A stretch of DNA of 64,000 bases, from NCBI GenBank assembly GCA_965202585.1, contig OZ241832.1:30256001-30320000 (forward strand), in the 5' to 3' direction. Both the position numbers and the translations under genes were made by a program. Positions 1 to 41,520 of this stretch are shown piece by piece (position 1 is the stretch's first letter; the number at the start of each line of letters is the position of its first letter). The notes under the pieces were generated by a model. The model worked only from the letters and a program-made list of their open reading frames with translations. It was not told the origin of the DNA and ran no database searches. Origin of the DNA: Thalia democratica. Taxonomy: Eukaryota.

Positions 1-195
1 GAAAGTTTTAAACGATGAAGAAGAATTTATAGTTCTTAGTTAATAGTTTTCAAGGAGTTCTGAATAAAAAATATTCTTAACGCCAACGATCAAAAATAAA
101 ACAGTTCTTGAAAGGTAAAAGCAGAGTTGTAAAATTGTTTGGATTGGAGAGAAGCATGAAAATTCTTAAGTAATAATTGGTAGGATTTTTTTATA

Positions 196-456
196 ATGCA
201 TACAAACTTCAACAGGTTTGTCAGAACGCATTTCAAGAACATTTTCGACTTGAAGTTTTTAGTGACTCGTCACTCCCATTTCGAAGGGGTGAAACACCGT
301 GGGCTGATGACTATTATGAAGAATGTCGGTTTGGAAGTAAAGAAAGGCCATCACGGTGGAAGAGACGCTGAAATGGCGATGGATCTTTTTTTCTACTGTG
401 CTAAGAATGTTCCAGACTATCGCAACTACGAGAACCAGCTTTGGAGTTTGTGCTAA
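196..456 (+). pseudogene. C-terminal fragment of a CAF1/POP2-family (DEDDh) nuclease, copy 1
   Basis: ORF reads HFKNIFDLKFL...RGL..IM..VGLEV..GHHGGRDAEMAMDLFF, matching the CAF1-family pattern F..IyDvK.l and H.AG.D..lT..lFF. The upstream frame is broken by stops. Confidence 0.6.
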
Positions 457-1879
457 GATACGAAGAAATAACTCTCGAAAATTATTAGGACATTTATAGG
501 AATTTTTGTTGTTCGTCTAATAAACTTTATTAGTAAATAGAAAAACTTTTAACAGTCATTCTTAAAAGTGTCAAGTAAACTTAAATAATATTTCAGTTTA
601 GATAAATGTACAGATTCGGTATCTGATAAGAATTTAAACAGATTAATTTTATAGAATTAATTTTAACTTATAAGTTTGGTCATAGCATAAAAGAAAGAAA
701 AATGTTAAACATAATTCTTTTGAAGAAATTGGTTAGTCAATTTCGACAAAAATTATGAATCAATAAATGGTGTTCCTTTATTATGTCAAGATTGACAAAC
801 AACTTGACACTTTTGTATTTTTTACCCGGAGAACAAAATTAACCAGGATATATTAATTTTAATTGTACTATTCATCATTTTTGTTTATCTAAATTTTGTC
901 CGATTTTTCAAGTATTTCTATTTCTTTATTTTAATCGTTGGGTATGATAATTTAAATTGCACTGTTCGTTATTTTCGTTAAATAGACAAACGTAATATGA
1001 TTGTTTTAAATTAAATAACTCAATACTGAATACTAAAATAAAATACTCAGTAAATGCAGAAAGATCAAACAATTCAATTACAAAACAACCCGACAACGTT
1101 AGTAACATCAACAGTAAATTGACATTAGTAACAGAAAAATTGATCGATGTAAGTGAAGGAAAACTTAAAAAGAAAAAAGCTTTAAATGTCATAAATTTTT
1201 ATGTTCCTGAAAATTGTAACAGTCCATCAGTTTACACAATTCAATTGCTAAAAAACACCTCAACTTAATTTAAGATAGCTTAGGTTCTAACTAGTTGACT
1301 GAGACTGAACTAAATACTTTATACCGTTTGAGTTAATATATCAGCAATAAAACAAGACAAGTTATTCTGAAACTAAGAAGTCAATCTATTAGAAAAAGAC
1401 TACTGAGTTTAAGAAACCTTAAAACATTCCACCATGGAAGAGGAATTAAAATATACATTTATGTTGACCGTACAAATCAAGAAATGGATAATTTTAGAAG
1501 ATTAAGAGCTGAACTGAAGGAAAAAACAAGCAGAAGCTGAAGTTTGAACATTAGCTACATGATTAAGCAATTAAGAATAGTTGAAAACTTTGGACAGCAC
1601 TTTTGTTTCAACACCCATGATCTGTGAGTCTACTAAGTCAAATTTCTTTAGTTTTAACAAAGAGCTTAAAATATAACAAAGACAAAAAGTTTCATTACAA
1701 TTATACCAAAAATATATTCAGTTTTTTTTTAGTGGTTGTACTTAAGCCTCAAGCACAGTTATTTGTAATAATTTTAACTTTAGTAAAAGTATTGTAACCT
1801 TTTGTATAAAAATTTATAAAATAATTTTGTATAAAAAAATTGTATAAAAATAGGCAAACACATCATTTCGTATATCAAC

Positions 1880-2100
1880 TAAGTTACTTACTACTGTTTA
1901 TAGAAAACCAACTTTTGCCCGCCAATATATTCCTTTTCAGTCGCCTTTATCACAAAAAATGGCTTTATTTCCTGTTTAATTATCAGAGCACACAAGATTT
2001 GTTCAAAGAAGTTGTTTAAGGAAGAATTAAATAAAAATTTTAAAGGAGTTTTACAGCTCTTAGTTATCCGTCACATATCATCAGTATAACAATTTACAAT
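1880..2100 (+). mobile_element. Penelope-like retroelement RT C-terminal fragment (copy at ~30350-30560)
   Basis: Frameshifted translation VYRKPTFARQYIPFQS...RAHKICSKKLFKEELNK...SYP, typical of the region after the RT core in Penelope-like elements. Confidence 0.7.
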
Positions 2101-2129
2101 ACAATCTCCTAATTGGAAAAACCTATTAT

Positions 2130-2352
2130 ACAAAAACCGAAGCATGCCAGAACACTCCGAGCGACGCAACCTCTGGGCCACGGAGGCCGGGGGAACCTGC
2201 AGAACTACTGGCGGTAGCGGCTACAAGGATGAGCTTGGAGAGGACGGTTCTTGAAGCTCTGTCGGTTTTGGCATGGACCGCCAAGATAGTTTTGTATTGG
2301 AACCGCAACCCGCGAACCCACAGGCCGCCAACGGGGAGGTGAACGCGGACGC
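2130..2352 (+). mobile_element. R2-like non-LTR retrotransposon 3' ORF fragment (degraded copy of 30594-30830)
   Basis: GC-rich island homologous to LE.TVLEAL.VEVLAWTAK.V.YWNRN.RTHR of the RLE fragments at 19655 and 30594. Confidence 0.7.
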
Positions 2353-3290: not shown

Positions 3291-3333
3291 AATTTTTTTG
3301 GTATAACATATTTTTAGATATTCTGAAAACAAA

Positions 3334-3820
3334 TCGGTGGCGATAGCGTGAGGCCCAAGAGCCGCCGATGCGGAAGCGCGGTAAGGGAGCCGCGCCCAAT
3401 CTGACCCGGGTCGACAAGCGTCGTTTGGAGCAGAAGCGCTGGCGGAAAGCGTTCGAACGACTGCCACGGGATATCGCCAAGCGGATCCTGCAAAACAAGC
3501 CGTTGGCCAAGGAGGGCTCCCTGCCGGAGGGCGCGCACGCCTTCTGGAAGGGTCTGTACAAGGGCGACGAAGAAGCTTTGCAAGGCGCCTGGTGTACACA
3601 GAAAGACCGGCACCGAGTTGTCTCGGGGATGAGGTTAAAACGGGCGAGACCTCATCCAATGGAAACGGTTGAGGGAAAACGCCGTGCGTCCCGACGGCCT
3701 CAATCGGGAAATGGTTCGTGCGGTCGACTTGGAAACTCAGGTTCAACCAGTTTCTTGACTGCGGGCATCTGCCGAAGATGCTGCGGCGGTTCAAACTAAC
3801 GCTCATTCCCAAGGTTGAAC
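3334..3820 (+). mobile_element. R2-like non-LTR retrotransposon fragment: pre-RT linker and start of RT (frameshifted)
   Basis: KRRLEQKRWRKAFERLPRDIAKRILQ...HAFWKGLY (R2 linker pattern), then in other frames AVRPDGLNREMV and FLDCGHLPKMLRRFKLTLIPK (RT N-terminal PDG and LIPK motifs). GC-rich island. Confidence 0.8.
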
Positions 3821-4400
3821 TAGAAAATAGAACGCTGTAAAACCTTGATTTTATGGCTCAATATGAAGTTGTAAAAATTGTGACTTGATTTTAATTTTTT
3901 CAAATTCTTATTAAACTTTAAAACTAAAAAGGACTAATTTAAACATCAATAAAATTTATAACTTTTTTGAAAGGCCTTAAATAATAGGACTCCGGACATT
4001 GAAAGTTTTTTACAACATCAAAAAGTTAAACAATTGTTTAAAATGTGCGACAGTTAAACGATCATACTACAATACATAAGTTGGCATGGAATTTATCTAA
4101 GAAGTATCAGTTGGTAAATAGAAAGTATAATAAATATTTAGTATTTATTTATGCTTTTAAGTTTTTAATGGTATTGTAAATTAAACTATATTATTGTGTA
4201 AACACTATAAATTGACATTGACTCAGTTTTAATAATAAAACTAAATGTTTTATTCACTATTTTTATTGCTAATTATTTTTATAAATGAAAACTTATCAGC
4301 TTAAATGTTTACAGATAAACCAACGGACGTAAATTTTGGATAAGTTTTTCCATAGAACACAAACAACTTTTAGAGTTAATGATAAAAATGCAAACGATCC
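3820..4400. repeat. Recurrent non-coding module M; paralogs at ~6140-6690, ~36520-37060 and partial ~35370-35480
   Basis: Shared aaccttgat(t/a)ttatggctcaa, ttttttgaaaggcc(t/c)taaata and gacattgaaag blocks. Confidence 0.85.
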
Positions 4401-4414
4401 CCTTTTAATAATAC

Positions 4415-5190
4415 TCAGAGTCACGAAGAAAAGTCCTTAAAATAGTTATTGTATCAAAAGACACAATAGATAATTGTCTTATTCAGAACAAAAGTGGAAG
4501 TGCAAACCAGTTCAAAACTCTAGATTCTATGTTTATGTTCAATTTCTTCAGAAGCGAACATACTAGATACTTCACTCCAAAGTTCAGGTGGAGATTGTTT
4601 TCTCATTAGAAAAACAACTACCATGAAAAAAAGTTTGTTTGGAAAAAGTTAATCTGGAGATTTTTTCATGTTACCGAATCTTAGAAACTTTTTTAAAACA
4701 TTTAAAAGGGAAACTGAACGTCCTGATCTGGAGAGTAACTTATTAAGATTGTTAATTAATCATTTTAACCTTCTTAATGACAACTTTTCTTCATGTTTCC
4801 CAAAAAGCATATCAAAAGATTGTAAAAAATTAGTGGATTAAGAATCCACTTATCTAAAAGAATTATAAAGACTACAATCTAGATATAACCAGTGAAGATT
4901 TTCTTATAGAGATCAGTAAAGATGGAGTTAAAGAAGCTAGCTTCCATGGATTCAAAAATTCTCCTGGTTTGAAGTTGTACAAAATTCTCGATACAACTGA
5001 CTTGCGACAATAGCAATAATAAACTGGTCATAATGGCAACCACTTATCTTGCAGAAGGAGGTTTCTCAGGTTTAATTGACATCAAAAACAAAAAATAGAA
5101 GCTTAGAAAAGTAGATGAAATGATGCATGAAGCCTTAGACATCCCACCTCAAATTAAAATTAAAAATGAAGCACAATCAAGCAGCAGTTC
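4415..5190 (+). mobile_element. hAT (FAM200/ZBED5-like) transposase remnants, including C-terminal dimerisation motif
   Basis: SRRKVL (cf. WLSRGKVL) at ~4420; ATTYLAEGGFSGLIDIK at ~5035-5090 (cf. TTYLCExGFS). Many stops and frameshifts. Confidence 0.7.
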
Positions 5191-5559
5191 CAATAAACGG
5201 CTGTTTGTGGTAAAATAATTTTAGAATAATATTTCTCTTGGAATTTTAGTCTCTATTATTACACTAAAAAAAATTTATGTACCTTCAACTGGAAAAAAGA
5301 GTCAACTTTAAATAAATAACCTACTTTTGTCAAAACCTCGTCTAACAATAGACTTCAAACCACAATCTGTAAAGAGATTGTACAGTTTTATAAGCACGGA
5401 GCATTTTGTAATGCAACAGAGCAGCACTATACTCACCGAGACGCGCACAATGGAATACCTCAGCCAAGCCAATTTAACATAATGTGCCGAACAGTATTGA
5501 TCGAATTCAGCCAAGTAATAACGAACATAACGTGCAAGTTGAGCCAAAACTGCTTTGGT

Positions 5560-7159: not shown

Positions 7160-7800
7160 ATAGGTAAATCAAAAGATGGTCCATGGTAGGTAGGCATATT
7201 GAGTTAATCACTTTTTAAAAATGAAGTCAACTTATTTACAATACATTGCATAATACATTTGCAACATTTAGTTGCTAAAAAGATAAGTTATCATCTACAC
7301 ACCCCATTGATTTTGGAGATTCAAGCTGTGAACAAAGTAAAAAGGCATGGTTTGCAGACTCGTTTGTTTAAAGAAGTCATGTATGTCAATGAGTAGGAGT
7401 TTGACAACTTAACTCTACACACTCAAGTCCGATGGGAAAAGGTTATTAGCAGTTTTTGATACAGTAATTGAATTTTTTCTACAAAGAACAGTAAATTACT
7501 AAATAAGCTTTAAGAAAGAAAAAGCGAAATTGCATACTTGTCTTACCTTCTATGGAAAATTTAATGTTCTGAACAAACTCCACCAAGGAAAAAACTTAAA
7601 TCTCGTAAAGGTCAAGGCTAGTTTACAAACAAACTGGAACTGTTTGAAAGAAATTAAAAAAAATGACCTCTACCAGTTCTCAAGCTTAGAAAACTTTATG
7701 CATCAGTAAAGTAAAGATTAAGTAAAAATTTATTCATTCCACTTGAAATAGCTGAAAATTGATGTGAATCAAAAATTTAAATTTAATTTCAAAACTTTCA
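7160..7800 (+). mobile_element. hAT (FAM200/ZBED5/SCAND3-like) transposase pseudogene fragment
   Basis: DGPW/SMVGRH, TIHCIIH..HLVAK, RHGLQTRLFKE, LHTQVRW, EIAYLS, NKLHQGKNLNL and KLELFE motifs across shifting frames. Confidence 0.85.
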
Positions 7801-7829
7801 TACGTTTTACTAAAAACGCACAGAAAAAA

Positions 7830-8430
7830 TTATCCAATAAGACCAGTATTATCAGCTATCAACACTCCTGAGTACAATCTAGCTAAATGCTTAGAAAAAC
7901 AAATATTAAGTTGTTTGTATGAAAAATAGTGTTTTATCATCAAATGAATTTGTTAACAAAATATCCAAGCTAAATATAAAACATTCTAACGATTTTGCTA
8001 GTTTAGACATCAAAAGCCTATATACTCACCTTCCGCTTAAAGAAGTAATTGAAGACATATTAACAACAATTTATGACACAAATATCAAATCAATTTTCAA
8101 AGAAACTAAATTAACTAAAAATGTATCAAGTAAAATTTTACAGTTGCGCTCCTAAAGTTTTTCCTTTATGGTGAAAAAGTTTACAAACAAATAGACTGTG
8201 TTGCAATGAGCAGGCCATTGGCCCCAATCTTAGCCAATTGGTTTGTAGCATCAAAAGAAAGTTACCAATTACAAGCAAATTCATAAAAAAACCTCTATTG
8301 TACACAAGATACGTAGATGATAAATTCGTAGTCACTCAAAACAAAACTGAACTAACAAACTTCTATCATGAAATAATTACTTTACACCCAAACTTAGAAT
8401 TCACTGTTCAAGAAAAATGTAACTATTACA
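7830..8430 (+). mobile_element. Penelope-like reverse transcriptase fragment (5' part repeated at ~18900-19045 and ~26944-27090)
   Basis: RPVLSAINTPEYNLAK, FASLDIKSLYTHLP, AMSRPLAPILAN and LYTRYVDD catalytic motif, followed by HPNLEFTVQE. Confidence 0.85.
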
Positions 8431-8829
8431 ATACTGACAGTATTTCAGATGTTTAACACAGCAAATACAGTAACTTTAAAGCTATTAGAAATCCATAACT
8501 GTTCTAAACACCTCAATGATGCGGATAACGACCATATTTAAGAGTTATAAAACAATCTAAAATTAGAAAAGACAGCAAAGAATCACCTAAAAAATAATTT
8601 TGCTGACTTCAAAAAATCAAATTTTAACGTTTGAATTAAGAAAAAAATAGGTTAAACTGCTCCGAAAGGAAAAGTAGCTCTTGCTTAAGGTTATATTTAT
8701 TTTACATTGTGCTCGTACTTAAGCAATTAAGTGTAATAAAAACATTAAAATAAAACTTACTGGAGACTTTTGGTCAAATCTAGTGATTCAATGTGTGAGT
8801 AGCATTAACAGTAGATCCAGAAATTAAAA

Positions 8830-9420
8830 TCGATGTTAGAATTACAATTTAAGTTACAACAAAATCCTAAACAATTCGAAACAAAAAAGTGTATAGCAGA
8901 ACACGACACACTTATCTTTCAATCAGAAGTTTGGTTTTTGTCACGAAGAAAAGTCCTCAAAAGATTTGTTGTATTAAAAGAAACAAAAGAAATCTTTCTT
9001 ATTCAAAACAAAAGTGAAAGTGCAAATCACTTAAAAAATCTTAAGTGGCTAGGTGGACTTCACTACTTATGTTCTATTTTTTTATTAAGGAACATACTTA
9101 ATACTTTACTCAAAAGTTCAGGTGGAGATTTTTTCATTGGAAAAACAACTACCATGAAAAAAAATTTAAAAGCTTGAGTTGACAAAAGTTAACTGCGCAA
9201 ATTTTATATGTTAGCAGATTTACAAACTTTTTGCAAAACTTAACAAAGGAAATTGGACATGCTGATCTAGGGAGGAAATAAAAGAGATAGGTAATAAATC
9301 ATTTCAACCTTCTGACAAATTTTCTTTATAATTCCTAAAAAGTTTATCAGATGATTGTAAAAAATTTAAGTGAATTATGATACCATTTATCTACAAAGAT
9401 TACAGATATTTCAGAGATAC
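8830..9420 (+). mobile_element. hAT (FAM200-like) transposase fragment; includes ORF 8833-9177
   Basis: EHDTLIFQSEVWFLSRRKVLKRFV...KWLGGLHYL...LNTLL (cf. L.HTEVRWLSRGKVL.RF...WL..L.YL). Confidence 0.85.
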
Positions 9421-10169
9421 CAATGCTTAAGCAGAGAACTGGTTTATAACTTTAAAACATCAAATTTTGAAGAAAAATTAAGATTGAAGCCACAATAACT
9501 TTAAATAAAAAACTTTTTAAAATCTTACTAAAAGTTGTCCTGCAACATTGACTTCTATATTGTACAAATAGATTACAGGATGCCACAAAACCTAGATTTT
9601 ATGAAGTCATACGAAGTTATTGAACAAGGTAGTTGTTTAAAGACCTTTGTCGGATGCAATCAGATATTAACATTTTATTCAATATAAAAACGTCAATGTT
9701 ATGTACAACTTGTCAGATAAAAAAAAATATCCAACAGTATAATCAATTACGTTAACCAAACAAATTAATGCTAAAATTTTTGTTCTTCATAAAAATTATA
9801 GGCTTGCTGAAAACGAACGCATAGACGAACTGCTCCTTAGCTACGAAGTATGAAAATCTAACCGATTTCAACTCCAAACCAGCTATCATTTACAATTAAG
9901 TTTGGCTTTAAATTAAAATATAGTTTTACAAAAATTAACTTTAAGATAATAAAATCTTTATTTTTTGGTCAAAATAAGTCTGAAATGGCCTGACCGACTC
10001 AAACACTGCAACAGGCAATTTTAGCTGCATCTCTTATGCAAACTTATGGTTGAATTAATATCATCATTTCAAAATTTTTGTTTGCCTTGTCAGCTCTTTG
10101 GCAAGAAAGAAGCTTGTTTACTTTTGAGCATCGCTTTAGCGTGAAACAATTGTCAAGTAATAAACCTTT

Positions 10170-10870
10170 GTCTTAATTGTAGAAAGTAGCTTGGACTAAA
10201 ACTGGCTTCATTAACATTTCTTACCTATCTGCAAGATGCAAAAGTCATGAAAATTCACTGAGCCATAAAAACAGCATGGTCTCGTCTAACTTATTAGGAA
10301 AAATACTATTAATAACTTATTAAGTGTAAGCTATAAGGACAGTATTGATAAGCACAATGCTAAAGTTCAGAAAAACAGAAAAATTTATGTCAATAATTAT
10401 TAAGATTATTCTTTTTTGTTGTTTGCAAGAGATTGCACTTTAAGGAAGTAATGAAAAATGAGACTCAATAAATCTTAATTGTTTCAGATCTTTGCTAAAT
10501 TTTGCAAGCATTCTAGATGAAGATATTAGTGACCACCTGGATAACAGTACAGTGTTTTAAGGAAATTCAGCTACAATACAAAATGAAATATTTGAACGTG
10601 TTCTTCTAACTTAAAAAACTAAGTTATTGCTCAAGTCAGTGAAACATTTTCTTAACTGCAATTACTGATGAAATCATAGACGTTTCTGTCCAAAATCAAT
10701 TATCATTATTCATTAGATATATACATAACTGCAAAGTTGTAGAAAGATTTTGGGGCTTTTTTCAGCCAGACAGAGTCAATGCTGATAGGACAGCAAATGT
10801 TATTCTGACAGAGCTAGAAAAAAAAAGAGGATAAAAAGAAAGTTGTGCGCACACTTATGATGGTGCTTCA
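10170..10870 (+). mobile_element. ZMYM1/THAP12-type hAT transposase fragment (partial copies at 21395-21550 and ~36110-36250)
   Basis: WTKTGF...CKSHENSLSHKN, QEIAL.G, SATIQNEI, ITDEIIDVSVQNQLSLFIRYI...VERFWGF and CAHTYDGAS motifs (DUF4371-type pattern). Confidence 0.8.
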
Positions 10871-12299
10871 ACTTGTGTGTTCAATTAAAAAATTTTAAAG
10901 CCAATGATGCTGAACTATATATTTTTAAAACAGTACTAATATGCATCTGATAAACAAGTTTACTCTTTTCAAACATTTAAATTAGTATTAGCAAAAAAAC
11001 GTATAAAGCAACACTTTGTTTGCAGAAATAATCAAATTAACCATCGAAAAACAAGTCATAAACACGCATGTGAAGAAACACACAAAGAATATAAAAAAGG
11101 CATTTTAAAAAATTGAGCTGTTTCAGATAGCAAACTAAAAATAATTCTACTGGGAATGAAACAAACGGGTATTCAATTAAGTTCTAGTATACCAAAAGTA
11201 GATACGTTATACTCAATTAATAACAGTTAAAAAATATAACCACCAAGTACCATACAATAATAGGGGATGTATGAATAAAAAGAATTTTTAAGCACTCAGA
11301 AGGGATTTACTAATGTAAAAGAATATTCAGAAGTTCTCAAGGATATTTTGATTTATTATGATAACTATTACTAAGCTAATGTTTCCAAATCACTATGCAA
11401 TAGGGGGCTTACTACTCATTTTTTTACTATTAGTGACTATTATTTGTCTTGATTTATTTTATAAACTAAAGCTGACTATAAATTATGTAATCTCACATAA
11501 GGTTGATGAAAAACCTTTCCAGACATATGACACCACATAAATATAGGGAATATAAAGAAAAAGATATATAAACTTTAGGTATAGAGATACCAATTTCAGA
11601 TTGGAGAATTCAGTTATAAACCTTTAAATTAGCCACACTCCTTTAATAAAATATTGACTTACCAAAGAAAAATGTGCTTAAAAGCAATGTCTTTAAGATC
11701 ATTCTACCTTAGTAATGATTACACTCCACGTCAAAAACTTAAAAAATCTGTTTTTTATCAAAAACATTACAATACGATTCATACAGCGTATTTATTTCTA
11801 AGAAATGCCGTGCAAGTGTTTTAAAGGACGGGTCAGATGAATGTTCAACATAAGATGTTAATTCAAAGTTCAGTTTATAATTTCGTTCCCCAAAAGAAAA
11901 ACATAACAACCCAATAACTTAAGCTTAAATAAGGAATTAATATCAACTAATATAACAGAGTTGATATTAAGCTCCCAAAGAATTATCAAAGATCATCTAT
12001 GAGCAAATAGTCTAAAACCAAGCATTTGGTAAAATTTCTGTTTTTTTTGTACTTGGTTAAATTTTAACTTGTGCTCATGTAAATCCTTGTGTGAATAAAA
12101 ATCGACCTGACTAAATTAAATACTAATTCAATGTTAATAACTTGAACAAAAATACTAATATATATTTAACATAGTTTAACTGCCAGAAACAAACAATTTT
12201 TAGGCCAAAAGTTTGAGGAACAATTTGTATATAAGAAGAAATCCCGTTCAAATTTATTAAGTAAAACGTGAAGCTACAAACAGCAGCTGCTATGGTTTA

Positions 12300-12680
12300 A
12301 ATGCTTATTAAAACAAAAGAATCCCGGTTGTCAGATTCTTCACTGCATGTTACTCTAGTAGCTAAAAATGAAATAAAAAGAATCTAAACAACGTATGACT
12401 AAAAACTCTGACGTTGTGATGATTATAAATGAAATTAGTACAAAATCTAAAGTACTTCGTGAAAAAAAAAGTATTTAGCAGAACACGACACACTTATCCT
12501 TCAGTCAGAAGTTTGAATTTTGTCACGAAGAAAAGTCCTCAAAATATTTATTGTACTACAAGAAACAATATATTATTTTCTTATTTAGAACAAAAGTGAA
12601 AGTGCTTATCATTTCAAAAATCTAGAGTTGCTTGGTGGATTTCACTATATATTTTCTATTTTTCAATCTGCACATATTAA
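12300..12680 (+). mobile_element. hAT (FAM200-like) transposase remnant
   Basis: PGCQILHCMLL and EHDTLILQSEV*ILSRRKVL; paralog of 8830-9420. Confidence 0.75.
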
Positions 12681-16532: not shown

Positions 16533-16544
16533 CAGGGTTGCCAA
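16533..16544. mobile_element. Possible DNA-transposon terminal motif CAGGGTTGCCAA (also ~24577, ~34308)
   Basis: Resembles (C/T)AGGGTTGCCA termini of DNA transposons. I found no inverted partner. Confidence 0.3.
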
Positions 16545-28920: not shown

Positions 28921-30593
28921 GATACGAAGAAATAACTCTCGAAAATTATTAGGACATTTATAGGAATTTTTGTTGTTCGTCTAATAAACTTTATTAGTAA
29001 ATAGAAAAACTTTAAACAGTCATTCTTAAAAGTGTCAAGTAAACTTAAATAATATTTCAGTTTAGATAAATGTACAGATTCGGTATCTGATAAGAACTTA
29101 AACAGATTAATTTTATAGAATTAATTTTAACTTATAAGTTTGGTCATAGCATAAAAGAAAGAAAAATGTTAAACATAATTCTTTTGAAGAAATTGGTTAG
29201 TCAATTTCGACAGAAATTATGAATCAATAAATGGTGTTCCTTTATTATGTCAAGATTGACAAACAACTTGACACTTTTGTATTTTTTACCCGGAGAACAA
29301 AATTAACCAGGATATACTAATTTTAATTGTACTATTCATCATTTTTGTTTATCTAAATTTTGTCCGATTTTTCAAGTATTTCTATTTCTTTATTTTAATC
29401 GTTGGGTATGATAATTTTAATTGCACTGTTCGTTATTTTCGTTAAATAGACAAACGTAATATGATTGTTTTAAATTAAATAACTCAACACTGAATACTAA
29501 AATAAAATACTCAGTAAATGCAGAAAGATCAAACAATTCAATTACAAAACAACCCGACAACGTTAGTAACATCAACAGTAAATTGACATTAGTAACAGAA
29601 AAATTGAATGATGTAAGTGAAGGAAAACTTAAAAAGAAAAAAGCTTTAAATGTCATAATTTTTTATGTTCCTGAAAATTGTAACAGTCCATCAGTTTACA
29701 CAATTCAATTGCTAAAAAACACCTCAACTTAATTTAAGATAGCTTAGGTTCTAACAAGTTGACTGAGACTGAACTAAATACTTTATTCCGTTTGAGTTAA
29801 TATATCAGCAATAAAACAAGACAAGTTATTCTGAAACTAAGAAGTCAATCTATTAGAAAAAGACTACTGAGTTTAAGAAACCTTAAAACATTCCACCATG
29901 GAAGAGGAATTAACATATACATTAATGTTGACCGTACAAATCAAGAAATGGATAATTTTAGAAGATTAAGAGCTTAACTGAAGGAAAAAACAAGCTGAAG
30001 TTTGAACATTAGCTACATGATTAAGCAATTAAGAATAGTTGAAAACTTTGGACAGCACTTTTGTTTCAACACCCATGATCTGTGAGTCTACTAAGTCAAA
30101 TTTCTTTAGTTTTAACAAAGAGCTTAAAATATAACAAAGACAAAAAGTTTCATTACAATTATACCAAAAATATATACAGTTTTTTTTTAGTGGTTGTACT
30201 AAAGCCTCAAGCACAGTTATTTGTAATAATTTTAACTCTAGTAAAAGTATTGTAACCTTTTGTATAAAAATTTATAAAATAATTTTGTATAAAAAAATTG
30301 TATAAAAATAGGCAAACACATCATTTCGTATATCAACTAAGTTACTTACTACTGTTTATAGAAAACCAACTTTTGCCCGCCAATATATTCCTTTTCAGTC
30401 GCCTTTATCACAAAAAAATGGCTTTATTTCCTGTTTAATAATCAGAGCACACAAGATTTGTTCAAAGAAGTTGTTTAAGGAAGAATTAAATAAAAATTTT
30501 AAAGGAGTTTTACAGCTCTTAGTTATCCGTCACATATCATCAGTATAACAATTTACAATACGATCTCCTAATTGGAAAAACCTATTATACAAA

Positions 30594-31030
30594 AAACCGA
30601 AGCATGCCAGAACACTCCGAGCGACGCAACCTCTGGGCCACGGAGGCCGGGGGAACCTGCGGAACCATACTGGTGATAGCTACGAGGATGGGCTTGGAGA
30701 GGACGGTTCTTGAAGCTCTGTCAGTTGAGGTCTTGGCATGGACCGCCAAGAAAGTTTTGTATTGGAACCGCAACCCACGAACCCACAGGATCCTGGCCGC
30801 CAACGGGGAGGTGGACGCGGACGCCAAACCGTCAACGTTTTCTGGTCCGGTGTGGAGATGGGCGGCCAACTTCTCTCACGGCCGACTTGGTCTTGTCTGA
30901 AGACCTTATTGAGAGGGGAGTCTTGGGGGCGCTCGGCAAAAGTCACCTCGGGGCAACCGGAGCATAAGACAATTGGTCGGAAGAACCATAAACAGCATGA
31001 GGGGCAACAGTACGAAAAACGGCTTAAACC
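30594..31030 (+). mobile_element. 3' end of an R2-like element (RLE C-terminus plus probable structured 3' UTR)
   Basis: GLERTVLEALSVEVLAWTAKKVLYWNRNPRTHRILA is homologous to 19990-20124. A GC-rich tail follows, with hairpins such as ggtctt-gtctg-aagacc. Confidence 0.7.
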
Positions 31031-31584
31031 AAATCATATATTTTAAAAGGAAGTTTAATAATTGTCAAAATCTGGAAAGATGGTTGAAAAAACAAAGAAT
31101 GTTGTTAATTGATGCTTTAGTTGAAAATAATCCCTTTCAATAACACCAGAATGACTTATACAAAAAAAAACAGCAATATCAAATGGAAAATATTTTGGTC
31201 AACGCTATAATGATATTAATGTTAGAAAACTTATGGTTTACCAAATTTCATCAAATTTAACCGTTTATAAATAAGTTGAGTTAGTAAAACATTGCCAATA
31301 AAAAAAAGAAGGAAGTTCTTCAGTAAATTATTAAGAAACTTATGGTAAAATTCAGTGTACTGCTTGAATACCAATTATTTTTGGGTTGTTGGAAGAAGTT
31401 TCAACTAATCAAAGGACATGTCAAACTACAATATATAAAATTATTAATTGATTAATATATAGGTTGCAGAACAAGTTGTTCAGAATTTCCCCAATTCACC
31501 AGATGAGACCACACTAAAAATTGTATAGTTGACAGTAATTATCTGCGGAAGAGGTATAGAAGCCGGAAATTATGTACAACAATT

Positions 31585-34500
31585 TTTAATTAAAAATGAA
31601 GCATTATTGTCAATGACAATTAATTCAGAGTTAAAATAGTTGAGACAAAATGGTTGGTAAAAATACACAAGAATCACCTTCATTTGAAAAACTATTTATT
31701 TCTGCAGCTTTTTGATTTTAAACAAGGTGAAGATTTAAAAAACAAAATAGAGTTTTTACATCCTGGTTTGTTAAGATGCAGTAGAGGGTTGGCACGGATT
31801 GTTTAAATAATAAGGAACAAAAAACTTAAAACAAACAGATGGAAAAATTAAATCATAATAGAATTACTAAAGCAAAGTACAAAACATTTAATTAAATGTT
31901 TCAAAAATTGTTTGGAAAAAGCTTTATAAAAAATACAATAATAATGACACAACAGATAAAATATTAACATTTCTTCAATAATTAGTCAGCTTGGTTACAT
32001 ATTCTCATTATAAATTACTAGAATCTAATCATAGAACATAGATAAAGAACTAGACACAAGTAAAGAAAAAAAAATTCAAGAAACCCTTATAAAAAATTTT
32101 TATGGTAAAACATATTTTTCTAATACAACCATTTTATTAAACATAACTTAAATAAGCACATTTAAAACAGGACTCTAAAATGAAACTCTACAAGCAACCT
32201 CAAAACAAAAGTTAAGCGTTGAGAATTAGTTTCGACTTTATAGGAACAATATTTTATAGAAACAGAAATAAAGGTTTTTAAGTAAGTTGCTGGACATTCC
32301 AGAGTTTCTAGTGGAAATAGAAAAGTCAATAAGATTGAGGTTAAAATTTTTAATTACAACTAAAAGTAAATATACTTTGTAAACGCTATTTGGTAGATGT
32401 ATAAACCATGTGAAAGATAATCCAACGTTGAAGGTAAATTTATAAAAGATGTAGATACCTTTTATTTTAAGAAAGATGAGCGTAACGTAAAAAACAAGTG
32501 GTAAAATATCATACAAAAATGCAAAATGTTTTGACATAATTGACTTAGAAAAGGTACTTATTTTGTTTAAACATAATAGGTAAAAAATTATATTATAAGC
32601 GTTATTATACTTATCTTTGAGGGTAACAAAATCAGCATCAAAAACGAAAAAAAATAAAAAACATAGCTGACTTAAAATTTAAGAAAGTTGTTGTTATTAC
32701 TAATAGTTTCAATTTAAAATCTTTTTTAATAACTTTCAGAATCTTATTATCAGAATATTTTGGACTGCTTTCCGTTTGTAAAAGTTTTCAAGTTATGGCC
32801 CGTTATGCTTCCTTGTAACCTTGTTAGAAGTTACAATAACTCCTGTAGTTTTACGCATTTCTTAACAAGTCTTAGTTTGTGAAGTAAAAATAAACCACAT
32901 ATATTTGTGAACAAACACTTTCGACCATGAACATAAACAAAAGTAAGCTACGTTCATATCTTACTGTTAGCAATCTGCAGTCATTACTGAGAATATATAC
33001 TTCAAATTACTTTCAGATTTTTAACAGCTTGTTTAAGACTTTTATAACCCACATATGTTTCGTTCTTAAAGCTACTTTTTCAATTTTGTAAAAGAATGGA
33101 TTGTCGATCACAGATCAGAAGAAGTTAACTGAATTGTCAGAACTAAGAAGAAAAACAAATTACTGCGGTTCCAAATAGAATAGTTATTGGTAATGTGAAA
33201 CCGAGACTTTAAGAAGGTCGTGGCTGCAGTTGACATGTTTGCAGCAAAATATGATGATCACTGCAGATTCGCAACAGTTGTGTCCCGAGATAAAAACAAG
33301 TCTGGGTGAGCTTAGTGATCATAGAAGAGCAACTCAACTTTCAGTACAAAAGCTTCAAACATGGATCAAACAATAAAAAAAAGTTTGAAAAGCGTCAGCT
33401 TGATGGCTTTAAAGCTTATCTCTATGCAAAATACAGAGACCAATAAAATATGGTAAAAGAAGAAGTTGAAAGGCATCAGCTTGAAATCTATAAACAATAC
33501 ATGAAGCAAAATACAGAGACCCTGAATTGGACCCACCGACTCAAACACTGCGACAGACAATTTTAGTTGCATCTCCTAACAGATTGATATATAAGAAAAT
33601 TTCAGTGATATTTAACGATAATAATTTAGCCGGAATAACTTATCATTTTAAGTGATGTAGTAGTATTTGTTACTAATTAGTACTTTTAATTATTTAATAA
33701 TACTTAAAACTGGTGACAAATACACTTGAAGAACTTGAAATATTTTTCTTATTTTTTCTTTAATTTTTCATAAGTTGAATAAGATCTTTTTTAATAACTG
33801 AACTGTTTTTAAAAGTTGAAATAATACTTTATTCTACTTAAATAAGCCTATTTCATATTTTTGTTTTCTTTGACTGTTCTATACATATAAATTTTTTTGT
33901 GAAATACACGAGATTGCTTTAAGATGTGATTGATTTCATTTTTTCTCATTTGAACATGAAGCTTATTTTTTGAGCGGATTATTTCAGTTAAGTATAGACT
34001 CGAGTGTATTAAAACCAAAACTGTTTTACACCACAAGAGCTTATAAGCTTTTCCAACACGAAAAAAAAAACTGTCTCTAATGCAATTCAATGTGTATAAA
34101 TTTAACACACTATGTAGAGCAATGTTACAATGCAATTTAACAAGCAATATTTCAAGTGAAACAATACTTTTTTTCATGTTTTAATTTGTAAAAGAATTCC
34201 CGTTGAAAGAAGAAATTGATGCCACAAAAACTGTATTTGCTAAAAATATACAAATAAACTTTTTTTTTTCTTAAATTCGTATGTTATTAATTTGTCAGCT
34301 TGTTTTTCAGGGTTGCCAAATGTTTTTAGCAAATTTGCTCTGGGTTTTCAAAAGTACACATTTTTGGGTCTGTTTTTAGCTTAAAGCTAAGTTTAAGATG
34401 TAAAACTGATTTAAATAATATCAAAAACATTGAAAAGAAACTGTAAAACTAGTTTAAATGTGTTTTTTAATAAAAAAATGTTTGATGATGACAAAATAAT

Positions 34501-35011
34501 TTTATCTATATGTTAGATTTTTTGAGTAATTTACCATAAATAACATCACCAATAGACAATACATCATTGGAAGGGAAGTAACAGGATAATAATATATAAG
34601 ATCAGTATTTTGAGGGAAAGCAATCTGTTGTCTATTGGTGTGCTTCAGTCATTCAAACAAAACACTGTAGTCCGTGTCGAAAAAAAATTAATGGAAAGGT
34701 TTATTTGCTTTTGTTTTTTTTTTACATTGCAATGATACCTTTGTCAAACTACAAGTCTTCACTTTTAAACTGAGTTTAATTTTAGTGAATAAGATTACAA
34801 AACATGGGAAGTAGATTTTGATAATGATAGTTTAGTTTCTTTATTAGAAACTTATGAATTAAGAGACCAAGATTTTTTTTTATGTCTTCATAATTTGAGT
34901 GTGAAAACTCAAGTTGTTTGAAAACAGCAGAAGACAACATCTAACTTTATTTTAAGAAAACATTCCAAAGAAAAAACTAATTTGAAGAAGACCTATCACA
35001 ATTTAGTCATT
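31585..35011. repeat. Older, more diverged paralog of ~13778-17239
   Basis: Collinear homology throughout, with clearly more substitutions than the 8044-bp duplicate. Confidence 0.9.
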
Positions 35012-35509
35012 GCAATAATATCTCATTGCAATAGAAGAAAATTCAATTTACATTAACTGATACAAGTGAAGGTACAAAACTTCATTTTAAAATGCTTTGT
35101 TTTGGTTATCCAGTAATGTCACAACAGATAAAAAAATTTAAATTTTGGGTTGTTTGATAATTTCAAACTATCCAATGGAAAATTCAAACTACAATATTAA
35201 AAGCCTAATATATACTCTGCAGAAAACAACCTTTCAGAATTGCCCGAATTCACTAGATGAGATCTAATAAAAGAACACATAGGAAGTACAAATTCGTACA
35301 GAAATAAATGAACTATTAAATTAACTTATCTGTTTAATTACTATTAACAATATTATTCTTATTAATTTTTAAATAAAAAAGGACTTACTTAGACATCAAT
35401 AGAATTTATAACTTTTCTCAAAGGCTTTGAATAATAGGAAGCCGGACATTGAAAGCTTTTTACAACATTAATAAGTTATACAATATCTATGAAAGATACA
35501 TAAAACAAA

Positions 35510-35830
35510 AGTACAGAGATCCTTAAGTGGCCCGACCAACCTAAACTTTGCAAATTCAAAAAGAGATGGTATGCACACATTAGTGATATCAAGAATGAAA
35601 ATAACAAGGGAACAGAACTTTCCAAGTACATTTGGAGATTAAAATACAATAACACTTGCTACAATTCAAGTCGGAGCATCATGCATAAGATTATGGAAAT
35701 AAAAAATATAGGTAAATATGCAAGACTTGCAACCTGGAAAAAAATGAAAAATCACTTGCTAACAAGAAACGAGTTTTAAATAAAAGACAAGAACTCTTCT
35801 ACACCTGCCCGCACTTTAGGAAATTTTATT
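35510..35830 (+). mobile_element. GIY-YIG endonuclease C-terminal fragment of a Penelope-like element
   Basis: FKKRWYAHISDIKNENNKGTELSKYIWRLK...CKTCNLEK...LNKRQELFYTCPHFR. Confidence 0.8.
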
Positions 35831-37629
35831 TTAAACCTAGCGTTAACCTTATCATTTATTTTTGTTTTTGCTTGTTCCCTTATTTGTTAAAAGTCATTTT
35901 GTTTTGTGTTGTTATAAGCTAAATCTGTATCTGTATATAATTTTCAAAAAATGCAAAAATTATTTTTTTAGCCAATTTCGCATTTTACAAACATATATAG
36001 TAAAAATTAAAGATGGCATCACAAATCATAAAAAAATATCCTTATTTTTCTGCACAAAATAAAGCTTGAAACATCATATTCTTTATTTTGTTTGCCATGC
36101 TCTTTGGGAAGAAAGTAGCTTGGACTAAAACTGGCTTTAAGAACATTTCTTACATATCTGCAAGATGCAAAAGCTGTGAAAATTCACTGAGCCATAAAAA
36201 CAGTATGGTCTCGTCTAATTTATTAAGAGAAATACTATTAATAACTTATTAAGTCAATTTAATTTAAGATGAAGTAGAAATTTATTTATCCACTTGAAAG
36301 AGATATGGATCATTGATATGGATCATAACTTTCATATATCTTAATAAATTTTTTTGTAATAAAATGTTAAAGTAATTATATTTCTAGTTTTCTTTTTCTT
36401 TTAATGACAAACTACTGTTCAAATTTAATTTTAATATTCCTATAATTCTGAACGTTTTATTAATATTTGTTTAATATAAATCATAAATATTTTTACAAAT
36501 TTTGTGCAAGCAATAAAGGAACTAGAAAATAAAACACTGAATAACCTTGATATTATGGCTCAATATGAAGTTGTAAACAATGTTAGTTGATTTTTTTTTC
36601 TTTTCTAAAATATCTTACTCAATTTTTAAATAAATAAGGACTTATTTAAATATGAATAAAATTTATAACTTTTTTGAAAGGCCCTAAATAGCAGGACCCC
36701 AGACATTGAAAGCTTTTTACAATATCAAAAAGTTAAACATTCTTTTAAATGAACAACAGTGATACGATTATACTACAATACATATGTTGGCCTGGAATTT
36801 TTCAAACAAGTATTGGTTAGTTTTTATAGTTATTGTAAAACAAATTATATTATTATGTTAACATTATAAATTTACACAAACTCAGTTTTTTAAAAAATTT
36901 CAATATGTTTTATTATTTTTATAGTATTCACATACATAAATAAAATTTTAAATTAATATTTAAACCATTAAAATTTTAGTTTAGTGTTCTCATAGAACAC
37001 AATTAACTTTCAGAGTTTATGATAAAAATGCAAACCATCACCTTAAGTAATGCTGAAATAGAGCGAAATTTTTTGCTAGTGAACAACACAAAAATAACAG
37101 GCAATATAATATGAGCAATGATTTGTTTAACTCCTTAATGATTACTAGATATGAAAAATCATATAAGTTTTTGACTCTATGTTTTATTATATTTCTAGCT
37201 GTTTATTTCAAAGCAATGAAACTTTAACGTTTAGTTTTAAATTTCACTTTAATAAACATATTTTTAATGGAGACTTTTAGTGCTATTAGTAAAATATTTA
37301 TTAATATAATGTGTTTAAATTATGAATTTGTAAAACAATGATTTGTTTAGATATATTTGGTTTTTTATCATTTGAGTAAAAAGAAAGAAACATAGAAAGT
37401 ATTTAAATATTTTATTGCTTAGTTTATTGGTGTATGTTCAGAAAAGTTTGAAAGATTATTTCATTAATTAAATTTATTAGAAGTTTTTTATTGTTAAGCA
37501 TATCAGAAAGGGGAAAACAATCATGATCAACTCCTGATCTGATTTGCATTGATAACTTAGTAGATGCAAATGGGGTTCCAAGTACTACTGTCATTACAAT
37601 ATTAACCTAATAATTATTTATCCTTTTAA

Positions 37630-37710
37630 TCATTGGGTACATACCCACACGGTAGAAGGATTCTGGCAAGACCTTAAGGACCATATAATGGGTGGTGGAA
37701 ATGTAGAGTG
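37630..37710 (+). mobile_element. Merlin/ISXO2-like transposase remnant
   Basis: WVHTHTVEGFWQDLKDHI matches the ISXO2 motif vHTntiEgfW..lK. Confidence 0.65.
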
Positions 37711-37829
37711 TTTTTAAAAACTTATTTTCAAATGCATTTGATCAATAACTTATACCATTTGTTATTTTAAAGCGTACATTCATTCCCGTACAAAAAAGAT
37801 TTTTTATAGTTTATCAAAAATATGAAAGA

Positions 37830-38070
37830 TAAAATTGTCTTAGCAAAGCCTGATAAGGGTTTAAGCATAGTGGTGCTTGACAAACAGAGTACTCGAGAAA
37901 AATGTTCGAAATGTTTGATGATAAATCAAAATTTGTTAAAATGAAACCTGTGAGTGATTTTGACATTTTGAATAAAATTGAGAAGGAGATAATTTATATA
38001 ATGACAGACTGGGAATCCAAGAAAGAAATTAGTCAAGTAATGTTTATTGAGGTTAAATCTGCAAGACCAA
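37830..38070 (+). mobile_element. Penelope-like pre-RT fragment
   Basis: IVLAKPDKGLSIVVLDKQ...MFDDKSKFVK (cf. ii..aDKG...Vvldk..Y..km..ll.d...f). Confidence 0.7.
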
Positions 38071-38289
38071 GATCTTAACCTTCATTAACTTTCAAGCTTA
38101 AAAATGTACTAATAAAAGCAATAAAAAGTAATCCCACAACTAGCACCTCAGTAAATTTAAATCTCAAGGTGCTTTATTATTATTTTATGTTTTCATTTAG
38201 TTTGTTATTAAAATTTTTGTTTTTTATATTCTATCAAATTGAAATAGAAGGATTTTAACAGCTGTTTGCAAAAATCATGGCGCTGATGT

Positions 38290-38470
38290 ATTAAAACTAT
38301 ACATTTTTAAGTTCTCATCTGTAAAGCAAATACTAGGAAGTTTAAGTCTGAAAGTAGACACTGAATCAGAAGTGTAGATGGCAGCAATCAAATGGTTGAA
38401 TTCTAGCAATAGGAGAGAACTTGCGGATTTAAAAAACTTAGAATATTGTAGCAGGATATCAAACTGTATT
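38290..38470 (+). pseudogene. BACK-domain fragment, diverged paralog of 20125-20330
   Basis: QILGSLSLKVDTESEV*MAAIKWLNSSNRRE. Confidence 0.7.
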
Positions 38471-38929
38471 TGGTAACTGTTTAAATTCATTTTAGGAGTT
38501 GAATTTCTTGTTCATCCAAGCGTTAAGAGAAAGCTCCCAAGGCTAAGTCTTATACTGATGCAAGCTAACATTACTATGGTACAGCCATATATTTTAACTC
38601 TCAACAGAAGAATTCTAGCCACAGCCTGCTGCAGTTTATATTTTATGCCAGAATAGACATGTATATTGTTTTTTTTGATATACTGAGTATTTTTCTAGTG
38701 TAATGTTACTTTTTCAAGGTCTTTTTTATTACAGTCAGAGTTATAAATTTTTATTTTAGTTTTATTCATTATTCAAGTATTTTTGTGTTTAAAAGTTTAA
38801 AATCAATGTGTTCTTGTGTTTTAAAGTTTTGACCACATTGCAAGTATTTTTAATGTATAATGTTTTTTATACAATTGTTATATAATTTGTTACGCATTAG
38901 GTTTCAACAAAAATTTTTAGAACAAAGAA

Positions 38930-39180
38930 CGAACGTTGAATAAGACTGCTTAATTAACAAATATTATATTCCTGGGTTCTTTGATAACATAACTGACTAC
39001 TTAATGGGCATTGGTCTGTTGTGGAAAAATATTTCAACTTATAACAAAGATAAAAATAGTTCAACAAATGCAGTCTCTGAATCCAGGTTCAAAGTTGAAA
39101 ACATATTATTTTTCCTGATCAAAAGAAACTACAAAAAACCTTATTTATTACTGTTATGTCTCAACACTTAACAGAAAAAT
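38930..39180 (+). mobile_element. Possible MULE/NOF-Foldback-type transposase remnant
   Basis: YYIPGFFDNITDYLMGIGLLW...STNAVSESRFK resembles the YY.P......l..PLW....s.a.vEs.F motif. Tentative. Confidence 0.4.
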
Positions 39181-41520
39181 AATTGAGTACAATAATTATT
39201 CAAATAGCAAAAAAGTTAAACTTAAATTTAAAATGGATATCAATAAGGAGTGAACAACTAAAATAGCAGTTGTTAGACGCAATTAAGCTAGAGTTGAAAA
39301 ACAACTGTTAAAAATAATTGATTAGACCTAATTTGACCAAACACCAACATTTCAAAATCATCCAAGTTAGTTTTTTTAAGATAATATGAAACTATGTTAC
39401 CCAACAATGTACAACAACAACAGTCAAATAAAACTTTATGTTTATTTTCAATACCAGATGATTAAAAGTTGGATTACATAAGTATTAGAGCTTTTACAGC
39501 CTGCCTTGCTAAGATGCAGTAGAGGGTTGGCACAGAACGTTTAAATCAATTATTAAGTGTGCCAACCCTGAACTTTGAAATACATTGCTACCATTTGAAT
39601 GAACAAAAACTCTATACATATTGAAAAAATTTAATTCAAGTGAATCTGAGAAAAAGAAGCACAGAGACCTAGACAATAGTTCTAAATCGATCCTGAAAAG
39701 TTGGAGCATTTTGTACAGTCATAAACTCTCAGGGAGCTGCAAAGCTTTAACCAATGAGTTAGATGACATACAAGATCTTACCATGAGAGACAATGTTGTT
39801 AAGTGTCAGCTTGATGGCTTTCAAGGTTATCTTAGTCAAAATTAACCGTCAAATATTTAGTGATGCATAACAAATAAGAGTTATAATATTAAGATCTACC
39901 TTAAAATATTATATGTGATGTTTTAATATCATATGGCCAAAAACAGCTACTTATAATGATAGTTTAGAAATAGTATACAAGCCTTTCTCTTAATTCTAGT
40001 AAGCTTTTTTTCTAGTACTAATAAAAATAGCAACATTATACGGTATTCTTGTGTGTTTAAAAATTAGTATTGGTTGGCCTGAAATAGGCTTTTTGTAAAA
40101 AAAAACTTTACAAAAATATAGCTGAAATTTTTTTATATTAAGCTAAATGCTCACGTTCCAATGGGCTCAAATTTGCTTTATTAAATGTTTGTACTAAAAA
40201 TACTAAGCTAGAGCGTTGCTGTAAGCTATGTTGGACTAAAATGAATACAAAATTGTAAAGAATGGATTCTAATTATAAATAAAAAATTATATTTTCTAAG
40301 TTAAAACCAAATTTATCTTATTTTTGATCTTATAAGTACTATTAACAAAGTATTAATAACTAATATCAAGATTTTTTTGAAGCTAATTAATAAAAACAGA
40401 CTTAGTAAAGTGTTTTATTATAATACAAAAATGGTGCTCTTTTTAAACTGGATTAAGCCTTTGGATGGTGGAAATGTGGTAACTGTAATAAGTGTAAGAT
40501 TCAGTTTATGACCAAGAAACATTTGCTCATAAGACATGCAAAGACTAATTTGCATCTGATAGGTTAATTGTTATCACTAACTCCAAACAGCAATGCTTTT
40601 TTTAGAGATTTAAAAAATAAGCAACACCAACCAGCACTTGCAAGAATTGCATAACAACATGGTTGTATGAAATCACAAAGTTGATGTTTCACAAGCAAAT
40701 GGCAAACTTCAATAAATTGTACACTTTCGCCAACAAAAAGTATGAATATAACATAATGAAATATAACATGCACAACATTCAGGAATGGCTATTTTGACAA
40801 AATTTCATGATTAACAATTACAACAAAAAATGTTGTGTTTAATACTTAAGGTATAACTCAAAGTCACTAATAAGTAACTTTTATTATTAAGTGCTGGAGA
40901 TTAATTAATAAGTTATTAATAAGTACTAAACATTAATAAGTATTTAAGGTATACTTAACTACAATTGTGTGAATATGATTAACTTAACGGTGCATATAAC
41001 ATAAGTTTTGTTAAGTAATTGAAATAAATCATTTCAACATATAGTAAACAGTACAGTGCTACTTTTTATTTTTGCAAGATTTTCCGCATAAGTTTGCCAA
41101 ATAATACATTAGGTGTTTCATGACTATCCTTGCTAAATAAAATTTAATACAACAGAAGATAATATTATAAAATTGATTTTGTTTCACAAACTTGACAATA
41201 CTAATACAGCTTTTAGCTTCTAAAGTGAAAAACTTTATTAAATTTCACTGATTTCACTTTGAAATGTTTTAATTTTTTTATATTTAACAAATTACTTTAA
41301 TTTATTTCATATAACCCTTTTATTCTCTAAAAATGAATAAAATTTAGGCATCATAGGTTTTATAAATTGTTTATATAACACAGGATAGTAATACAAGATA
41401 ATTTTTAATTTATTCAAAACAATTTTATCATAAATAAATATATCAAATTTTGCTATATATTAATTTTATCAGTCAAGGTAACTTAACTATATTTGTAGAA
41501 GATCTTGGTAAAACACTCAC

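Follow-up and report, generated by a model that had tools for sequence, protein, structure and literature searches.

Uni-strand piRNA clusters are characterized by a long single-strand precursor transcribed from a flanking promoter, by small RNAs of 24-32 nt with a 1U bias, by PIWI dependence and by H3K9me3. Clusters of the flamenco type are biased in orientation, 79% of the elements being antisense in D. melanogaster, and contain local duplications (PMC10495008). In mosquitoes, the clusters are produced by transcription that runs on from genes lying upstream (bioRxiv 10.1101/2022.08.22.504762). RNAs of piRNA size (28 nt) are made by salps, and small-RNA libraries of Salpa thompsoni are available (PMC5174732). 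Here we analysed a stretch of the genome of the salp Thalia democratica (assembly GCA_965202585.1, contig OZ241832.1, positions 30,256,001-30,320,000 of the forward strand), which we call the window (64,000 nt) and in whose left part decayed slices of transposons and host genes form a strand-polarised graveyard. The anatomy of this region fits that of a candidate uni-strand piRNA cluster: it resembles Drosophila flamenco and the core clusters of mosquitoes, with their many endogenous viral elements, in being a domain of tens of kb that holds mixed, decayed transposon fragments in one orientation.

Strand polarity of the array

1-39900, + strand: strand-polarised array of decayed transposon and gene slices (excess of open frames, internal direct duplication, purine bias)

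The preliminary description had claimed that the recognisable pieces in this region all read sense on the + strand, and the polarity is borne out over its whole length, coding remnants being confined to that strand. The expected number of stop-free frames was derived from local dinucleotide-preserving simulations, recent duplicates having first been collapsed to leave 24.4 kb. In the collapsed array, the + strand has 62 frames of at least 50 aa for 36 expected (z 4.8; z 5.7 for frames of at least 60 aa) and the - strand 50 for 48 expected (z 0.3), so that the orientation check after collapsing duplicates that had been proposed comes out in favour of polarity. The + excess survives other block sizes, a second-order model and the removal of GC-rich islands, and it persists in the single-copy DNA alone (8.5 kb, z about 3), stretches of which likewise carry + slices. 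The + strand is purine-rich in 36 of the 40 1-kb bins, and all 540 internal tblastn paralogue matches are on the same strand, with 0 on the opposite one. No inverted blastn HSPs and no TIR-like inverted repeats were found in the array and no intact or young transposon insertion was seen there, in agreement with the reported absence of intact elements and paired TIRs. Since the array homology begins at base 1, the array probably extends to the left of the window.

The - strand frames of the array (at least 60 aa in the whole array, 40-59 aa in the collapsed sequence) have no transposon-related Pfam match. A comparable set of - strand fragments had been named as the result that would speak against polarity, and none emerged from these scans. 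The - strand ORFs flagged earlier that were checked are not conserved as coding, one showing 0 synonymous versus 14 non-synonymous changes and another having stops in its paralogue. No exon-like conserved - strand frame was found inside the array either. One-orientation transposon fragments over tens of kb, which are among the sequence features that define uni-strand piRNA clusters, are present here, and this is statistically robust. The right flank (40-64 kb) has a mild excess of - strand frames (z 2.4-3.8); no promoter or coding gene was confirmed there and Pfam revealed no gene on its - strand frames.

Identity of the slices

The slices related to reverse transcriptases and their associated nucleases are the following, all on the + strand:

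1854-2086, +: Penelope-like RT 'thumb' slice in two frames, from motif reading only, no Pfam match; copy at 30312-30545
2117-2356, +: LINE ORF tail with a 98-nt conserved core; longer copy with GC-rich 3' sequence at about 30690-31140
3347-3837, +: GC-rich single-copy slice with the pre-RT region and RT start of a non-LTR element, from motif reading, no Pfam match
7768-8453, +: reverse transcriptase core in three frames, including YVDD (Atlas, NCBIfam, Pfam)
13043-13336, +: GC-rich slice read from its motifs as the end of a non-LTR RT, no Pfam match
19653-20129, +: C-terminal domain slice of a non-LTR RT protein; copy at 27697-28173
35504-35919, +: GIY-YIG-like nuclease slice, from likeness to Tara contig L002, no Pfam match
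37810-38075, +: Penelope-like RT N-terminal slice, from motif reading only

DNA transposons and host genes contributed further slices:

184-453, +: CAF1/DEDDh exonuclease-like C-terminal slice with stop codon; copies at 20604-20873 and 28648-28917
4412-5215, +: C-terminal half of a hAT transposase; its 'WLSR' part has paralogues at 8940-9399 and 12422-12663
7208-7393, +: hAT core slice (HCIIH motif); copies at 18276-18491 and 26320-26535
8815-9399, +: FAM200/GTF2IRD2-type hAT slice (Atlas)
10025-10831, +: ZMYM1-type hAT N-terminal slices (TTF-type zinc finger, DUF4371-like), from motif reading
20133-20261, +: BACK-domain slice abutting a LINE slice; copies at 28177-28305 and 38345-38428
37556-37714, +: Merlin/IS1595-like transposase slice, from motif reading only

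When Pfam was run on all stop-free frames of both strands (at least 60 aa in the whole array, 40-59 aa in the collapsed sequence), only BACK passed the threshold and no complete domain was found, a profile search of this kind being too insensitive for fragments this short. The BACK match (PF07707; 22.1 bits for a cut-off of 20.9, E = 1.7e-4) is partial, covering profile positions 53-95 of 103. Only five identities have support from the tools: BACK, the reverse transcriptase, the C-terminal domain of a LINE, a hAT of FAM200 type and, weakly, a CAF1/DEDD exonuclease. The family names of the preliminary description are supported in part, its R2-RLE, Penelope, GIY-YIG and Merlin coming from motif reading; the probable MULE that it listed could not be located.

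The reverse transcriptase at 7768-8453 is assigned to RT clusters by Atlas (0.93) and resembles NCBIfam RT families (E = 5e-5 and 2.5e-4) and Pfam RVT_1 (E = 0.078). The slice at 19653-20129, formerly described as an R2-like RLE, has an Atlas score of 0.94 with 184 shared features. The model of its top match, with which kinship is not established, aligns to C-terminal parts of RVT_1/zf-RVT proteins, and for the R2 clade (RLE) Atlas points only to the C-terminal domain of RT proteins. An exhaustive comparison of the 204-aa frame with 1.84 billion proteins gave one 87-aa Tara fragment, a spurious ankyrin match and no LINE match, the sole sequence relative of the slice among these proteins being P0001; the PDB has nothing similar by sequence or profile, and the AlphaFold model (pLDDT 40) is unusable. 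For the Penelope-like element, the RT domain is supported, the Penelope-type motifs and the GIY-YIG come from motif reading and the Tara contig only, and the slices are non-contiguous. Positions 35550-35838 are 89.7% identical to this Tara Oceans contig, whose upstream part has GIY/YIG-type motifs.

Among the DNA transposons, 8815-9399 has an Atlas score of 0.94 with 169 shared features, and PF27046 occurs in 23 of 100 matches. Local Pfam finds nothing for the FAM200- and ZMYM1-type hATs; the characteristic motifs are present. The TTF-type zinc finger of 10025-10831 recurs at 36070-36249, where it matches Transpos_assoc (E = 0.028), and neither Pfam nor NCBIfam matches the Merlin-like slice. 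The sole Pfam match of the CAF1-like slice is to CAF1 (E = 0.13, profile positions 235-278, weak); it also has weak NCBIfam matches to DEDDh exonuclease regions (E = 0.03) and no PDB match, and its stop codon is followed by AATAAA. A word-indexed protein search left two of three slices without a match and linked the third to one 76-aa Tara fragment. Rfam and tRNA scans, GC-rich islands and L001 included, gave nothing, and public assemblies have no exact product of the window's ORFs on record.

Growth by duplication and deletion

The main duplicated blocks are the following:

1-2357, +: block X; copy at 28465-30829 (97.6%), partial copy at 20421-21403 (98.8%)
10709-21403, +: source block of the most recent tandem duplication; matches 21393-29448 at 98.5-98.9%
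13768-17239, +: blocks Y-Z; older copy at 31573-35011 (89%)
21393-29448, +: tandem copy of 10709-21403, without counterparts of 11257-12619 and 13158-14426

Most of the growth of the array took place at the DNA level: a single old mosaic unit, 8-11 kb long, was duplicated head to tail in nested fashion, and kilobase-scale deletions have trimmed the result. A direct paralogue inside the array exists for 79% of 1-39900 (9% for the flank); 64% of the region is internally duplicated at 85% identity or more and 47% at 95% or more. As in tandem segmental duplications, copies lie head to tail with shared junctions and none is inverted. The most recent junction (21393-21403) has a short microhomology, and the copy of the 10.7-kb block has already lost two 1.3-kb pieces; the stretch 12620-13157 of the source block is more diverged from its copy (84.6% identity). 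Positions 22469-25282 and 32183-35011 are 92% identical. The differences between the recent copies, at few sites, have no clear strand asymmetry (A/G 36 versus C/T 28), with the sole exception of A/C 16 versus G/T 5.

The many co-oriented pieces are explained by duplication, which multiplies them, and their small size (0.1-0.8 kb) and abutment by deletion. About seven founder families account for the pieces, and the 'about 20 independent fragments' counted previously are not supported. The argument from some 20 independent co-oriented insertions is weakened because duplication and deletion yield most of the multiplicity and the small size. A uni-strand cluster acting as a trap would hold many independent, diverse and recent insertions; the array has its seven or so families, yet is mostly internal duplication. 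The lack of any young or intact insertion counts against an active trap.

Origin of the polarity and comparison with known systems

The explanation that we favour, with a little less than even confidence, is that of a polarised graveyard grown by duplication and deletion, whose founders owed their polarity to orientation-selective retention and which would be a locus of the uni-strand piRNA-precursor type. We infer a founder mosaic of about seven families, all sense on the + strand: one non-LTR, one Penelope-like and one Merlin-like element, two types of hAT, and slices of the BACK and CAF1-like kinds. Its polarity most likely arose from retention relative to a putative - strand transcription. 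The candidate precursor would be read from the right flank on the - strand, which would make it antisense to the elements.

The main competitor is a neutral origin, in which a few old insertions shared their orientation by chance and were then directly duplicated in tandem, with neither transcription selection nor a small-RNA role. We regard it as a serious possibility, if a less probable one. On sequence alone, the locus remains an ordinary-looking duplicated transposon graveyard. The extent of internal duplication and the decay of every piece agree with it, as does the number of founder families, since with one founder per family the chance probability of a common orientation is only about 0.016-0.03. 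Nevertheless, the + frame excess persists in single-copy DNA, and the lack of collinearity among slices of the same family suggests that each family stems from more than a single event.

Alternatively, the array could lie in a long - strand transcription unit, either a large intron or a read-through zone, where sense insertions were purged for their splice or poly(A) signals with no piRNA role. An antisense bias of intronic elements is established in mammalian genomes, and the mild - frame excess of the flank is congruent with such a unit. Yet intronic bias is usually partial and the polarity here is complete, the array has no exon-like conserved - strand frame and the flank no recognisable protein gene, so that this scenario seems unlikely.

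It is very improbable that the founder unit was joined from sense slices, by Helitron-type capture or by template switching of Penelope- or R2-type RTs, and then amplified. Families bearing an RT are present, and coding slices from the interior of host genes and of unrelated elements do adjoin directly, all sense (e.g. LINE/BACK at 20130/20133). Helitron-type capture elements are recognised by a Rep/helicase or by 5'-TC and 3'-CTRR ends with a hairpin. Nevertheless, no Rep/helicase match exists among all frames of at least 40 aa, TIRs, poly(A) tails and target duplications were not found, no terminal hairpin was noticed, the junctions are ordinary DNA duplication/deletion junctions and frames are broken within slices. 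We give similarly little credence to mosaics built by active RNA-templated capture, in which transposon, host and viral cDNA slices would be added in fixed orientation to transcribed archive loci; that such capture would be the acquisition step of a piRNA-type memory, as opposed to whole elements being trapped passively and then decaying, is just as doubtful. Finally, a tandem cluster of multi-exon + strand protein genes, with the 'fragments' as exons, would account for the direct 8-11 kb repeats in a single orientation and for the AATAAA downstream of the CAF1-like stop codon, but was rejected because paralogues gain stops and mostly non-synonymous changes; the slices also have broken frames and belong to transposon families that are unrelated, none has a complete Pfam domain and no predicted protein of comparable length in public databases contains them.

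If - strand piRNAs are made here, as the favoured piRNA-precursor reading would have it, the locus would rank among the earliest piRNA source loci to be mapped in thaliacean tunicates, and one growing mainly via tandem duplication and deletion rather than new insertions. With uni-strand piRNA clusters it also shares local duplications and a possible entry of transcription from a neighbouring opposite-strand unit. It differs from them in that its polarity is complete, theirs being about 70-80%, in that it is known from sequence alone, in consisting mostly of internal tandem duplication with no young or full-length insertion, and in its very short pieces, which include DNA-transposon and host-gene slices. 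The short co-oriented slices of unrelated genes set end to end recall Helitron or Pack-type gene-fragment capture, whose Helitron or MULE hallmarks (Rep/helicase, TIRs) were not found here. With macrosatellite-like tandem segmental duplications, which arise by unequal exchange or replication slippage, the array shares copies of 8-11 kb that follow one another head to tail and are 70-99% identical, a junction with microhomology and deletions peculiar to single copies; in contrast to these, the repeated unit is neither a gene nor simple sequence, but a polarised mosaic of transposon slices.

Duplication and deletion in the array

The array of transposon and gene slices (window 1-39900) grew and was trimmed by tandem duplication and deletion at the DNA level. 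The preliminary description had counted about 20 independent fragments, but most of the array turned out to be direct internal duplication. All 28 long blastn matches within it are direct, all 540 internal tblastn paralogue matches are on the same strand, and no inverted HSPs were found within the array. An internal paralogue exists for 79% of its length (64% at >=85% identity and 47% at >=95%), compared with 9% of the flank. The youngest duplication copied 10709-21403 to 21393-29448 with 98.5-98.9% identity outside 12620-13157, and its tandem junction carries short microhomology. Counterparts of source positions 11257-12619 and 13158-14426 are missing from the copy. Two deletions of about 1.3 kb against a sequence divergence of only about 1.5% between the tandem copies (10709-29448) suggest that this genome loses large pieces at a very high rate compared with its rate of substitution. 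The stretch 12620-13157 is only 84.6% identical to 21940-22464, whereas its neighbours reach 98.5-98.9%; the divergence may stem from gene conversion by a copy beyond the window or from composite descent. Several older layers underlie this event, among them the following.

Older duplication layers of the array
1-2357 and 28465-30829, + strand: block X
13768-17239 and 31573-35011, + strand: blocks Y-Z, 89% identity
4420, 8940 and 12422, + strand: three hAT "WLSR" pieces, 75-82% identity

Since homology is already present at base 1, the array probably extends beyond the left edge of the window. Head-to-tail duplication multiplies pieces and preserves their orientation, which accounts for the many co-oriented pieces, and losses of kilobase size, at a divergence of only about 1.5%, account for the short pieces and the abutting of unrelated slices (for example, a LINE slice ends at 20129 and a BACK slice starts at 20133). 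The extra material found in one copy is itself a mosaic (7984-11125 vs 19053-19258), suggesting that the mosaic is older than the duplications. The only sizeable inverted repeat of the window (43687-44485) is located in the flank; its arms of about 125 nt (43687-43810 and 44355-44485) are 75% complementary and 545 nt apart, and a MITE-like element and a hairpin are both possible readings of it.

Identity of the slices and repeated motifs

Five identities are supported by similarity tools, among them the Atlas.

Slices with tool support
184-453, + strand: CAF1/DEDDh exonuclease tail (weak support)
8175-8453, + strand: reverse transcriptase (Atlas 0.93; NCBIfam RT families, E 5e-5; RVT_1, E 0.078)
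8815-9174, + strand: FAM200/GTF2IRD2-type hAT (Atlas 0.94)
19653-20129, + strand: C-terminal domain of a non-LTR RT protein (Atlas 0.94, 184 shared features)
20133-20261, + strand: BACK slice (above Pfam threshold)

For 19653-20129, the model belonging to the best Atlas hit, which is a candidate relative only, aligns with RVT_1/zf-RVT proteins in their C-terminal parts. The R2-RLE, Penelope, GIY-YIG and Merlin labels are motif readings, and the probable MULE was sought in the array and not found. For the R2-RLE candidate, an exhaustive protein search matched only an 87-aa fragment, the PDB gave no match and the structure model was unusable. The GIY-YIG label has an additional basis in a related Tara Oceans contig (L002) that carries upstream motifs: 35550-35838 is 89.7% identical to its positions 726-1007, and upstream of that match the contig carries sequence that the window lacks. 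As L002 extends past the slice boundary, the GIY-YIG-like piece is truncated at 35550. Two short Tara Oceans metagenome contigs in all show 80-90% nucleotide identity to array pieces, consistent with an oceanic animal. The window as a whole, eukaryotic DNA with a GC content of about 28%, is AT-rich, and Rfam and tRNA scans across it gave no matches.

Two short motifs recur in the array. The first, a GC-rich core of 98 nt, is about 80% identical across four window copies and the other Tara contig (L001), with flanks that vary by copy type; its in-frame substitutions are conservative and suggest a conserved LINE ORF terminus. Inspection by eye also revealed two short hairpins in it, with changes that may be compensatory, and Rfam gave no match to it. 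The second, of 81 nt (core AAGCGTCAGCTTGATGGCTTCGAAGCTTATC), has six copies, two per unit and always on +.

Repeated motifs
20019-20116, 28063-28160, 30693-30791 and 2234-2324 (L001 133-231): 98-nt core
15582-15662, 17864-17944, 23631-23711, 25907-25987, 33350-33430 and 39761-39841, + strand: 81-nt motif

Strand polarity

The claim that the fragments are polarised on + was upheld by a test independent of family recognition, in which stop-free frames were counted per strand after collapsing duplicates of >=85% identity (24.4 kb retained) and compared with simulations preserving local dinucleotide content. On the + strand, frames of >=50 aa number 62 vs 36 expected (z 4.8) and those of >=60 aa number 39 vs 17 expected (z 5.7). 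This strand alone shows an excess: the - strand has 50 frames of >=50 aa vs 48 expected (z 0.3). Changing to 250-base blocks or to a second-order model, or excluding GC-rich islands, leaves the excess in place, and strictly single-copy DNA (8.5 kb) shows it too (z about 3). Purines are enriched on + in 36 of 40 one-kb bins of the array.

Comparable - strand fragments, named beforehand as the observation that would speak against polarity, did not emerge: the - strand frames of the array revealed nothing recognisable by eye and no transposon-related match in Pfam. The previously unassigned - strand ORFs behave as non-coding, judging from their paralogues; one shows 0 synonymous and 14 non-synonymous codon changes, and another has stops in its paralogue. 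The flank (40-64 kb) is biased the opposite way, with open frames mildly in excess on - (z 2.4-3.8). None of ten - strand frames there (39901-64000) matches a Pfam family, and the - strand spliced transcript that had been proposed could not be identified as a protein gene. A 26-nt tandem repeat of 3.9 copies (62591-62713) lies within a Cys-, His- and Pro-rich open frame on +.

Origin of the founder polarity

About seven founder families were counted, every one sense on +. Were each family the product of a single event, a common orientation would arise by chance with a probability of 0.016-0.03; the lack of collinearity among slices of one family makes a larger number of events probable. We infer, tentatively, that insertions lying antisense to a long transcript were retained, which is the best-known cause of such polarity. 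On this reading the transcript would come from the - strand, and a founder mosaic sense on + would result.

The array may thus be a putative piRNA-type locus, a reading that we find plausible and hold tentatively. Counting against it, no young insertion was found in the array, no promoter or gene was identified in the right flank, and recent substitutions show no clear strand asymmetry. A functionless graveyard is a possible and only somewhat less likely explanation of the same slices. An orientation filter acting within an intron or on read-through is improbable, and capture mosaics or a gene cluster are hardly credible. Among the recent copy pairs (1-30829), A/C differences number 16 vs 5 of the complementary G/T (about p 0.03), with symmetric transitions, on too few sites to carry weight.

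The putative piRNA-type locus may be compared with known systems. In flamenco, the antisense orientation accounts for 79% of elements, and there are local duplications (PMC10495008); in mosquitoes, clusters arise by read-through from upstream genes (bioRxiv 10.1101/2022.08.22.504762); and salps produce 28-nt RNAs of piRNA size (PMC5174732).
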